Of a DNA stretch of 64,000 nt, positions 3,001 to 6,000 are shown in pieces. A program made the position numbers and the translations under genes. Position 1 is the first letter of the stretch, and each line of letters opens with the position of its first letter. The notes below the pieces were generated by a model that saw only the letters and a program-made list of their open reading frames with translations, ran no database searches and had not been told where the DNA came from. This DNA comes from Macrostomum lignano (Eukaryota), in NCBI GenBank assembly GCA_002269645.1, contig NIVC01001651.1, positions 62,001 through 126,000 of the forward strand, written 5' to 3'.

Positions 3001-6000
3001 AGGAATGAAGGAGTGAAGAGGGACAGGAATGGAGGAATGCAGAGGGACAGGAATGGAGGAGTGTAGAGGGACAGAAATGGAGGAGTGTAGAGGGACAGAA
3101 ATGGAGGAGTGTAGAGGGACAGAAATGGAGGAGTGTAGAGGGACAGAAATGGAGGAGTGTAGAGGGACAGAAATGGAGGAGTGTAGAGGGACAGGAATGG
3201 AGGAGTGTAGAGGGACAGGAATGGAGGAGTGTAGAGGGACAGAAATGGAGGAGTGTAGAGGGACAGGAATGGAGGAGTGCAGAGGGACAGGAATGGAGGT
3301 TAGAAGACAGTACATTTTGATTGAATTTGCTTTCAGAGAAGGCAATTATTGCTGGCAAAAGAGCCAAAAAATATCGGCGAGTTTCAGGACGCGTCAACTT
3401 CATCGACAGCCTCATCCGCCTCCGACAATGGCACCGACGCCGTCGCCGTCTCCTCGCCTTCGTCGCCGCCTCGCCTCTGGCGCAGCAGGCGCATCTTCTC
3501 CGCGTACTCGGCAAAGCCGTGCCGCTCGTAGCGCAGATTCTTGTGCTGGAAGAAGGCCACCCGGATGCTGGCCGGGTCCCAGCGGTTCGGACGTCGTACG
3601 GCGGTGACCGCGCGCGGCTCTCGCTTGCCGGCCTCGATCAGGACGGCGCCGTGCGACAGCGCCACGGCGACGCCACCGCTTGAAGAGTCGCGAAACGCTT
3701 CCAAGGTGTCGGTGAGGAACTCACAGTCTCCTGGGCCCGGCTGGCCTCGGGGCGGCGGAGGCGGCGGTGGAGGTGGAGGCGGTTGCGGCATCGGTGGCTG
3801 AACGTGCCGCTGCTGATAGCTGGCATGGTGGCAGTAGTTACAGCTGCAGCCACCCTGCTGCTGGCTGCTTGAGTAATAAGGATACCTTTCGTAGCCATTG
3901 TGATAATATTGATAGGACGAATAGTAAGAATACTGGCTGTGATGATGCCTCTGTTGCCATGGATACTGGCTAGGCTGGTTGCTGTAATAGTTCGGGTTTT
4001 GCTGCTGCTGCTGCTGCTGCCGACTGGCGTGCCACCAGCGCTGATAGTCAGGTGACGGAGGAGCGGCTGCTGGAGTGACTGCAGAAGGCGCAACAGGCTC
4101 ACCAATCTGGGGTCGAAAGGACAGCTGTTGCTGCTGCTGTTGTTGCTGTTGCTGCTGCTGTTGCTGTTTCTGCAGCTGCTGTTGCTGTTGTTGTTGCTTC
4201 TGCTGCTCTTGCTGCTTCTGCTGCTGTTGCTGCTGCAACTGTTGAATCTGAGAAGCCAACCGAGATTGCTGGTATTGCTGCTTCTTCTGCAACATAAGCT
4301 GACGCTGCAGTTGCACCTGCTGCTTAAAGTGCTGCGGCTGCTGCTGCTGCGGCTCCCAACGAGGTGGCGACTTGCGAAACCAGGACGATATCGGCGGCAG
4401 GGGCTTGGCGGATGTCTCCGCCGCTGCCTCGGCCACCACTGCTGATACCGCTGTTGCGGGCGACTCCTCCTTGAATGGGCTCTGATTGTTGCTCTTTAGC
4501 GACTCAATGCCGCTGTCAATGCTGCCTGGCGAGCCGTCCTCCAGAGTGACCGTCGCGTGATGAAGCGGTGGCTGCTGCTGAACGGGAGCTGCTGTTGGAG
4601 GGGGCGGCGGCGGCGGCGGTGGAGGCGGCAGGACCTGCGGCATTGGCGGCTGCGGCATTGGCGGCTGCGTCCTGAGAGCCCGCTTCCTGCCGGCAGACAT
4701 GGCAAACAAACCTGTCGACTCCGCGGGGGCTCCGCGCAGTCGAGCGATCCGCGGAAAACTGCTGAGCGCCTGCAGGTCGCCCGTCTGAAACTTGCGCCGT
4801 TGGCCCTCGACGGAGCCGAACTCGTCCGTGTCGCTCAGCGTGTAGTTCGGGAACACGTGCAGCTGCTCCTCCTGCCGCGCCTGCCAGCCCCGCCGGCCGA
4901 GGGCCACCACGACGCTGCAGCCGCCGTCGACCAACGCCGGCTCCTTGTGAGAGTGCGCGCAAAAGTCCAACGCCACTGTGGCACCACTGAACGGCCGTCG
5001 GCTTGGCGGCGTCTCCGCCGAGCCCAAGCGACAGTCGACGGCGGCGGCTGATTGCCGCGTCTGGTTAGCGAAGGCCGACGGCGCCGCGGTTGCCAACACG
5101 CGGGCCGCCGCGTCGGCCAAGCAGTTGAGGCCGCGCGCCAGGTCTCGCTCGGAGTCAGCGCAGCGCAGGCGGAATTTACGCGCGGTGCCGCGTGTCCTGG
5201 CAAATTTGCAGGCATTGTGAAAGAGGCTCCAGGCGCAGCCGAAGCTGTACACGGCGCCGCAGGTGTCCGGATCGAAGCCCTGGCAGGCGCAGGTACGCGA
5301 GTCGTTGGCCGCGCAGCGCCGCTCGCTAGGAATGCCGGTCCTGGTAGCTCGGCCCGCAGGTAGCCGAACATGTAGTCGGCCAGGTGAGCGGGCACGCCGT
5401 CCCAGCACACCATGGCAACGGCGGTCACGGCCGTGTCGCAGGTGTGCCGCTGCCTGTGCCTGACCAGCGCCAGGTAGCGCTCGGGTTCTGACTGGCGCCG
5501 CCTGACGATCCACTTCGCCGCCGGACAGCCGTCGCGTGAGGCGCCGCCCTCCCGCGCCGCCCGCGTCAACCGTTCGATGCGGAGCTCGGCGCTGCCCGGC
5601 GCCAAACCGAGGCGCGACTCGAGCAGGCGCCTCAGCTCGGCAACTGAGCCGGCGCTTCCCAGGTGATGCGGCGCCGATTGAATTGGCGCCGAATTGGCGC
5701 CGCTGCTGCCGCAGCCTTCGCAGACTGAGCAGGGCTTCGCTGACATGATCGCTGATGCTGGGGCTGGGCTCTGCTGTCTGGGATTGCCTTGGCTTCGGCT
5801 CTCTGCCTGTCTCTCGCTCTCGCTCTCTCTTGGTCCGTTGGCGACTCTCTTTTTGACCTTTCTCTCACCGCCACCGCTCACCAATTTGGCTGCTGCTGCC
5901 GCTGCTGCCCAGCTCTCCGCCTCTCAAAGCCGCCTCCCGCTGGCCTTCAGACCGCTACCACCTCCCGCCCACTAGCCGACCTCACCCTCCCCCCTCTCTC

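Follow-up and report, generated by a model that had tools for sequence, protein, structure and literature searches.

It is still debated whether TET proteins matter chiefly as oxidases of 5-methylcytosine (5mC) or as chromatin scaffolds, and the question has so far been approached through engineered mutants of the HxD iron motif in mice and flies. The gene described here raises the same question in a natural protein. It lies on the minus strand of a 64,000-nucleotide stretch of contig NIVC01001651.1 (the window, meaning that whole stretch), where nucleotides 5746-3384 form a single-exon gene for a TET catalytic domain with a conceptual product of 787 residues (one base restored). Residues that bind iron, 2-oxoglutarate (2OG) and the methylated base in other TETs are replaced in this product, while the zinc-binding framework is kept. 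What, then, is such a protein kept for? We think it probable that the gene belongs to a TET lineage long without canonical dioxygenase chemistry, retained as a zinc-scaffolded, probably DNA-binding, non-catalytic protein.

A TET protein with a changed catalytic centre

By sequence match the window protein is a member of the TET subfamily of the TET/JBP 2OG-Fe(II) dioxygenases. It scores 81.4 bits against Pfam Tet_JBP (PF12851; cut-off 34.9), matches 158 TET representatives at E<1e-30, and has a core that is ~45% identical to human TET2 and metazoan TET1/2/3. In a HMMER alignment the construct used for the human TET2 crystal structure (4NM6) is matched at E=2.4e-97, the similarity falling into two blocks either side of a glutamine/proline (Q/P)-rich insert. 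No identical protein is on record for it, exact look-ups with three ORFs of the window having given none. An AlphaFold model built with 46 homologues (pTM 0.77), which gives a predicted fold only and was used for fold assignment only, had as its top PDB match the TET2-DNA complex 4NM6 (TM 0.76/0.81, E=6e-39). In common with human TET2 and metazoan TETs, the protein has a Cys-rich domain followed by a double-stranded β-helix (DSBH) that is split by a low-complexity insert. The gene and its parts, all on the minus strand, are as follows.

3384-5746: TET-family gene, with ATG at 5746-5744 and stop codon TGA at 3386-3384
4932-4949: first iron motif, H-K-E-P-A-L, equivalent to TET2 H1382-R-D1384-L-H1386-N1387 (HMMER alignment)
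3612-3614: codon CGC for Arg712 in place of the distal iron ligand His1881, within KREPRAVT (3626-3603) (alignment)
3543-3569: S-I-R-V-A-F-F-Q-H, equivalent to TET2 R1896-I-S1898-L-V-F-Y1902-Q-H1904 (alignment)
4713-5746: Cys-rich domain and N-terminal DSBH half, residues 1-345 (TET2 alignment)
5731-5711, and from 5530, 5446 and 5324: zinc ligand motifs CSVCEGC, GCP, HTC and ERRC (which holds R1261)
From 5291, 5243, 5210, 5036 and 4961: further zinc ligand motifs, CAC, FGC, CKF, DCRLG and CAH
3744-4712: low-complexity Q/P-rich insert of about 320 residues dividing the DSBH, as in other TETs
4523-4488 and 4397-4365: lineage-specific motifs in the insert, common only to the TET of Macrostomum lignano considered below
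3468-3743: C-terminal DSBH half, residues 669-760, starting CEFLTD...GGVAVAL (TET2 alignment)
3387-3467: short acidic C-terminus, without the conserved C-terminal tail of other TETs

TET2 numbering was mapped via the 4NM6 construct sequence (index +1125 or +1473), which reproduces H1382, D1384, H1881 and R1896. The first iron motif retains its His, but Asp1384 is replaced by Glu (GAG, 4943-4941) and the base and DNA contacts H1386 and N1387 by Ala and Leu. With Arg at the distal position, H-K-E...R stands in place of the H-x-D...H facial triad that holds iron(II). The clamp on the last DSBH strand that binds the C5 carboxylate of 2OG, R-x-S in TET2, has Ser at 1896 (AGC, 3569-3567) and its Arg displaced two residues on, to 1898 (CGG, 3563-3561). 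Tyr1902, which stacks on the base, is Phe (3551-3549), so that the three contacts to 5mC (N1387, Y1902 and H1904) read L, F and H. Thr1372 is kept, yet the Tyr1902 hydroxyl of the T1372-Y1902 scaffold is lost; the roles of this scaffold, of the iron ligands and of R1261 are those described in PMC6244454.

Conservation of these positions was tabulated in the best TET representatives, one per 50% cluster, retrieved from a set of 1.84 billion cluster representatives. At H1382, D1384, H1881, R1896, N1387, Y1902 and H1386, where the window protein has H, E, R, S, L, F and A, the representatives have His in 168/168, Asp in 167/167, His in 135/135, Arg in 135/135, Asn in 164/167, Tyr in 134/135 and His in 144/167 cases, respectively. 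Deviations at D1384, H1881 or R1896 occur among the representatives only in the window TET and the M. lignano TET. An alignment to metazoan TETs had been proposed in the initial annotation, and it places the three residues as invariant in 135-167 representatives. The motifs and codons quoted there all proved to be present, and the HMMER alignment to 4NM6 pairs them as claimed.

Outside the catalytic strands the framework of the domain is retained. The zinc ligands C1193, H1219, C1221, C1263, C1271, C1273, C1289, C1298, C1358, C1378, H1380 and H1912 are all kept, and the N-terminal C1133-x-C1135 of TET2, in a region that did not align, reads C-E-G-C (CxxC) in the window. Also retained are R1261, H1416 and H1904, together with the DNA-backbone contacts R1262, W1291 and K1299; the changes S1290A, M1293L, Y1294F and S1303T are conservative. 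The description of the gene as a TET homologue with a preserved zinc scaffold and a disabled Fe/2OG centre is upheld. The gene product lacks a CXXC domain and the gene has no introns. The C-terminal tail (TGPY-type motif) found in 92/133 TET representatives is missing from both the window and M. lignano TETs, which terminate ~52 residues past the FFQH strand; the TET1 counterpart of this tail is the OGT-binding C45 segment (PMC6214653).

Human TET2 provides direct precedents for loss of activity. The class Ia mutations H1881R/Q/N, R1896M/S/G, S1284F and S1898F impair activity with structure conserved (PMC6625141), and one of them, R1896S, is employed as the catalytically dead control for TET2 (PMC10406918). 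In the window protein H1881R and R1896S, identical to class Ia mutants, occur together, and S1284 and S1898 are changed as well; its full set of differences from human TET2 at such positions is D1384E, H1881R, R1896S, S1898R, N1387L, H1386A, Y1902F and S1284V. Because H1881R and R1896S inactivate human TET2 and the iron site here is incomplete, no canonical dioxygenase activity is expected, and we strongly infer that the Fe(II)/2OG-dependent oxidation of 5mC has been lost from this protein. The cancer mutants differ in being somatic single changes in an otherwise canonical enzyme, whereas the changes in the window gene are combined, germline and evolutionarily old.

A TET without catalysis need not be without function. 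In Drosophila, flies with an HxD-dead tet are viable whereas tet-null flies die as pupae, indicating an essential role independent of catalysis (PMC10735219). Wild-type Drosophila Tet keeps all its catalytic residues, however, and its inactive form was engineered, unlike the window TET. Literature searches on TET pseudoenzymes and flatworm TETs found no account of natural loss of TET catalytic residues, and no reported example of a natural pseudo-enzyme within the TET/JBP family. Pseudo-enzymes are known from a different branch of the superfamily, among the JmjC proteins, where JARID2 for example retains the DSBH fold as a chromatin scaffold after loss of its metal ligands. The gene family is a known one and the M. 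lignano protein already public, but the searches made also turned up no paper analysing flatworm TETs.

Could the unusual residues simply be base-calling errors in a canonical TET? We regard this as barely credible. Nothing speaks for it beyond one possible indel error (the frame break considered below), while the key codons lie one to three in-frame substitutions from the canonical ones and are surrounded by dozens of other lineage-specific replacements. Moreover, three independent M. lignano copies have R1896S and Y1902F too, encoded by the same codons. The assertion of the initial annotation that these are in-frame substitutions, not the product of indel errors, therefore holds.

Kinship with Mlig025520 and the order of losses

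The sole specific relative of the window protein in 5.8 billion proteins is M. lignano Mlig025520, which exists as three near-identical copies, g1, g2 and g3. The g2 protein (PAA48208.1 / UniProt A0A267DFX7) is uninterrupted, 930 residues long and annotated 'Methylcytosine dioxygenase TET'. In the core each of the two proteins, that of the window and that of M. lignano, has the other as its nearest neighbour (57% identity, vs 51-52% to the next best), and this reciprocal relationship was recovered in 930/1000 bootstraps. The linker motifs SIDSGxESxKSN and LPPIxSWFRKSP are common to both and occur in no other TET. The two also share Y1294F and S1303T, and Mlig025520 is likewise single-exon, CXXC-less and short-tailed. 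With a M. lignano protein as its closest relative, the flatworm affinity first suggested for the gene is borne out. The next nearest representatives, from insects, spiders, vertebrates and a bivalve, are all canonical; neither word-indexed searches, among them one with a profile of the window and M. lignano sequences, nor the exhaustive search of representatives found a macrostomid TET beyond the M. lignano cluster. The two genes are nevertheless far apart, with a synonymous divergence (dS) that is >2 and saturated, and with different neighbouring genes. The window gene would accordingly be a flatworm TET orthologue that is related to Mlig025520 but deeply diverged from it.

In every M. lignano copy the corresponding stretches are H-K-D, S-H-A-T-T and T-S-M-S-L-V-F-F-Q-H, so that the iron triad and Ser1898 are intact, unlike in the window. 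They share with it S1896 (AGC) and F1902 (TTC), in identical codons, and have Ala for N1387 and Phe for H1386. The M. lignano TET itself is therefore a protein with Ser for the invariant 2OG-binding Arg1896 and Ala for Asn1387 but with its iron triad retained (NIVC01005213.1:12493-12792). R1896S, Y1902F and the N1387 and H1386 states of the M. lignano TETs are found in no other representative. In the g3 copy (NIVC01005213.1 ~12330-12400) we also noted a frame break just past '...KPQQS', relative to the uninterrupted g2; because of this break the NCBI model of g3, PAA45902.1, finishes out of frame and is missing the C-terminal DSBH strands.

Since R1896S, Y1902F and the loss of N1387 and H1386 are common to the intact M. 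lignano copies, about half of the rebuilt site is ancestral; most simply, the 2OG clamp and the residues contacting the base disappeared ahead of the split between the gene lineages. The active site had been presented as rebuilt. The substitutions stand, but not all are specific to the window gene, with ~half of them shared; of the HKE...PR...SIR signature, for which a search of relatives had been proposed, M. lignano shares S1896 and retains H-K-D and His1881. The changes private to the window protein are D1384E, H1881R, T1883V, A1876G, V1900A, S1284V and S1898R.

A bias towards GC is evident in the window lineage. Third-position GC content (GC3) is 0.76 in the window TET and 0.55 in the M. 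lignano TET, and Gly, Ala, Arg and Pro together account for 40% of the window core; the M. lignano core has 31% and the family consensus 26%. Among derived changes the window lineage gains and loses these four residues at 14:4 and the M. lignano lineage at 4:11, and the changes towards them in the window include H1881R, S1898R, A1876G, V1900A, T1895A, L1880P, H1386A and C1374A. On our reading of these sequences the private changes would represent GC-driven drift at positions that were already free to change once R1896 and N1387 had been lost in the ancestor, and not adaptive redesign.

This composition bears on a second possibility, that the protein is an active oxygenase with altered chemistry. 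Iron would then be held by His267, Glu269 and another ligand, 2OG or some other acid by Arg729 together with R1261, and the base pocket, altered by Leu at N1387, Phe at Y1902 and Ala at H1386, would accept a different substrate. S1898R does introduce an Arg two residues from the lost R1896 and facing the same side of the strand, from where it could in principle reach 2OG; R1261, H1416, H1904, T1372 and H1382 are all retained; and an H-x-E motif is found in other 2OG oxygenases, the JmjC enzymes. The distal His is nonetheless an Arg with no substitute His nearby, and we know of no 2OG oxygenase that functions on one His and one carboxylate only. M. lignano, with S-M-S in this strand, has no Arg at either 1896 or 1898, which makes the window Arg a late, two-step, GC-favoured gain (AGT to CGG). 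H1881, invariant in 135/135 TETs, is moreover a position at which change to Arg inactivates human TET2 (PMC6625141). We consider an altered chemistry very unlikely. It had been offered in the initial annotation as one of two readings; nothing was found positively in its favour, and the private changes fit GC-driven drift.

The preferred reading, a non-catalytic protein, would then have arisen in steps. The common ancestor of both genes would have lost Arg1896, Asn1387, His1386 and the Tyr1902 hydroxyl; the iron site would have been dismantled afterwards in the window lineage (His1881 to Arg, Asp1384 to Glu), giving a product that presumably no longer binds iron productively; strong GC-biased substitution would have moved many relaxed positions to Gly, Ala, Arg and Pro; and selection would have retained the zinc-stabilised Cys-rich/DSBH fold plus most of the DNA-backbone contacts.

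Selection on a gene with one frame break

The dead active site was carried by a gene that purifying selection acted on. The ratio of nonsynonymous to synonymous substitution (dN/dS) between the window and M. lignano cores, calculated by NG86 and LWL85, is 0.14-0.25 (0.14-0.18 in the N-terminal block and 0.24 in the C-terminal block), values to be read as upper-bound style estimates given the saturated dS. At columns that are >=98% conserved across TETs the window protein keeps 59/74 residues (80%) and M. lignano 68/74 (92%), against an agreement with the consensus of 28-29% at variable columns (window 28%). A Tajima-type relative-rate test gave 42 vs 35 derived changes (p=0.43), with no overall acceleration of the window TET. 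That the gene encodes a folded protein under selection, and not one in random decay, is in agreement with its low dN/dS and with the retention of 80% of residues at conserved columns vs 28% at variable ones.

The changes at invariant columns are also unevenly placed, as had been suggested. In regions picked post hoc, namely the three catalytic strands plus R1261 and H1416, 8/17 such columns are changed in the window protein vs 4/54 elsewhere (Fisher p=6.5e-4); the same comparison in the M. lignano TET gives 4/17 vs 2/52 (p=0.026).

The coding sequence contains no stop codons despite 305 one-step routes to a stop, and therefore any neutral phase can have covered at most ~0.03 substitutions per site (95%) if mutation is unbiased. 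At that divergence the 17 invariant codons of the catalytic strands should have taken up ~1.1 changes; 5 private ones are observed (P ~0.005), and several of the catalytic codon changes need two or three base substitutions. Decay following inactivation is thus an unlikely source of the catalytic changes. The single frameshift, absence of stops, relative-rate result and low dN/dS are not those of a long-decayed or processed pseudogene. A retrocopy was considered and rejected: the M. lignano counterpart is also single-exon, and no poly-A tract follows the window TET stop.

The reading frame is nevertheless broken once.

5336-5338, minus strand: frame break, one base missing in GGA-CC^GGC between 5337 and 5336 (frame comparison and alignment)

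The ATG sets the frame of the first 136 codons (5746-5339), and the remainder follows that of a 709-codon open reading frame (ORF) at 3384-5513; one added base at 5337/5336 restores a gap-free match to M. lignano ELPHQGIPIERRC. The interval 3384-5746 was accordingly right for the TET gene, but not as a continuous frame. An intron or a programmed frameshift at this point was rejected, as there is no GT..AG and the M. lignano alignment runs across the site without a gap; introns in the window are AT-rich, 60-110 nucleotides long and GT-AG. The missing base is either an assembly or haplotype error or a very recent inactivation of the gene. If real the frameshift is very young, and in both cases the dead active site is older.

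The second of these possibilities makes the locus a recently dead unitary pseudogene, in which the frameshift is real and fixed, the locus is decaying and the dead-but-conserved state describes the past. The TET core would be untranslated, as the next in-frame ATG follows the N-terminal DSBH half. This account departs from the one we prefer only in the present-day status of the window copy. In its favour, the one-base break falls in a conserved stretch of gap-free alignment and in a CC dinucleotide, not in a long homopolymer, and ~7.5 kb of the adjacent titin-like gene can be read through clean introns without a frame error. The break is, on the other hand, the sole disablement in 788 codons that offer those 305 paths to a stop, and the gene shows no overall rate acceleration. 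A similar isolated break in M. lignano g3, absent from g2, indicates that copy-specific or assembly artefacts occur in this family. Recent death also leaves unexplained the multi-nucleotide changes at the catalytic codons, whose origin must lie further back. Taking these together we judge a recent pseudogene to be unlikely, though a good deal less so than either sequencing error or altered chemistry.

Several of the observations weigh against a TET that is still conserved as a non-catalytic protein. The frameshift sits within the conserved Cys-rich domain, and ~7.5 kb of neighbouring coding sequence is free of unexplained frame breaks; this gives no obvious sign of an assembly prone to indels, and the missing base may be a true deletion. 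Private losses at the most conserved columns number 10 in the window protein vs 1 in M. lignano, which fits relaxed constraint too and is as expected of a recent pseudogene. The bound from stop codons would be loosened somewhat by GC-biased fixation, and the test of catalytic strands depends on the choice of regions already mentioned. The ancestor may still have been an enzyme of some kind, since the M. lignano TET has S1896 alongside a complete H-x-D...H triad, and only one related lineage is available for comparison.

A putative scaffold role and the setting of the gene

If the protein is made today, a non-catalytic, DNA- or chromatin-binding scaffold function appears the most likely. Such a role would be exercised via the core and the long Q/P-rich insert, and not through OGT (the tail being absent) or a CXXC domain. 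A putative salt bridge between Glu269 and Arg712 may possibly occupy the former metal site. A wider proposal, which we put forward more tentatively, is that TET became a non-catalytic chromatin protein early in flatworms (of macrostomorph type) and was maintained by selection over a very long period, with the iron centre perhaps replaced by the Glu269-Arg712 pair.

Were this wider proposal true, the gene would be a natural and ancient counterpart of the engineered catalytic-dead TET alleles. A catalytically dead but conserved TET made by evolution, bearing the leukaemia changes H1881R and R1896S, would allow scaffold function to be tested independently in a natural protein, and would also point to the surfaces that this function needs, namely the zinc scaffold and the DNA-backbone contacts, with the OGT tail and CXXC domain dispensable. 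As M. lignano is a transgenic model amenable to RNA interference, the idea is directly testable there.

The finding may also bear on the history of DNA methylation in flatworms. Tet genes are reported to be absent only from animals without 5mC (PMC8330077), and M. lignano is cited as retaining DNMT1/3 and low 5mC (PMC11292947, PMC10658182). That its TET lacks the 2OG-clamp Arg although DNMT1/3 and low 5mC are retained suggests that active demethylation was eroded first, before the loss of DNA methylation in other flatworms. A non-catalytic flatworm TET may be a possible intermediate on the path by which planarians and parasitic flatworms came to lack TET and 5mC altogether. The observed/expected CpG ratio is ~1.0 in the exons 3384-5746, 22308-27369 and 29533-32066 (0.79 window-wide, where it is lowered by repeats), and these genes therefore carry no footprint of germline gene-body methylation.

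Upstream of the TET gene is a ~2 kb GA-rich intergenic region shared with a divergent gene on the plus strand, a giant titin/twitchin-like muscle gene at 7917-36200 whose best database relatives are only 42-48% identical. Neither tRNA nor Rfam matches were found in the window. The other features noted are as follows.

7917-8753, plus strand: I-set Ig domain of the titin-like gene
21072-27369, plus strand: long Fn3/Ig exons of the titin-like gene, with short AT-rich GT-AG introns
31428-32066, plus strand: Ser/Thr kinase domain of the titin-like gene
35076-36200, plus strand: a further Ig domain of the titin-like gene
27449-28576, minus strand: ORF of 375 residues, opposite to and between titin-like exons
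2602-3299, 8073-8394, 8752-9373, 9889-10878 and 11133-12230: dense mini- and microsatellite arrays
57456-58001, plus strand: fibrinogen C-terminal domain exon (Pfam, 124 bits)
61839-62414, minus strand: cadherin-domain exon (Pfam, 46 bits)

The 375-residue ORF is mucin-like, with a hydrophobic N-terminus, ~25 PTTPE(P/T)STAPA repeats and a C-terminal transmembrane-like segment; it has no Pfam match and no identical protein on record. The satellite arrays are built of a 24-mer x29.5, which starts ~85 bp 3' of the TET stop, (GTCT)x81, a 15-mer x41, a 23-mer x43 and an 18-mer x57, and yield long spurious ORFs in several frames. The fibrinogen and cadherin exons belong to unrelated neighbouring genes.

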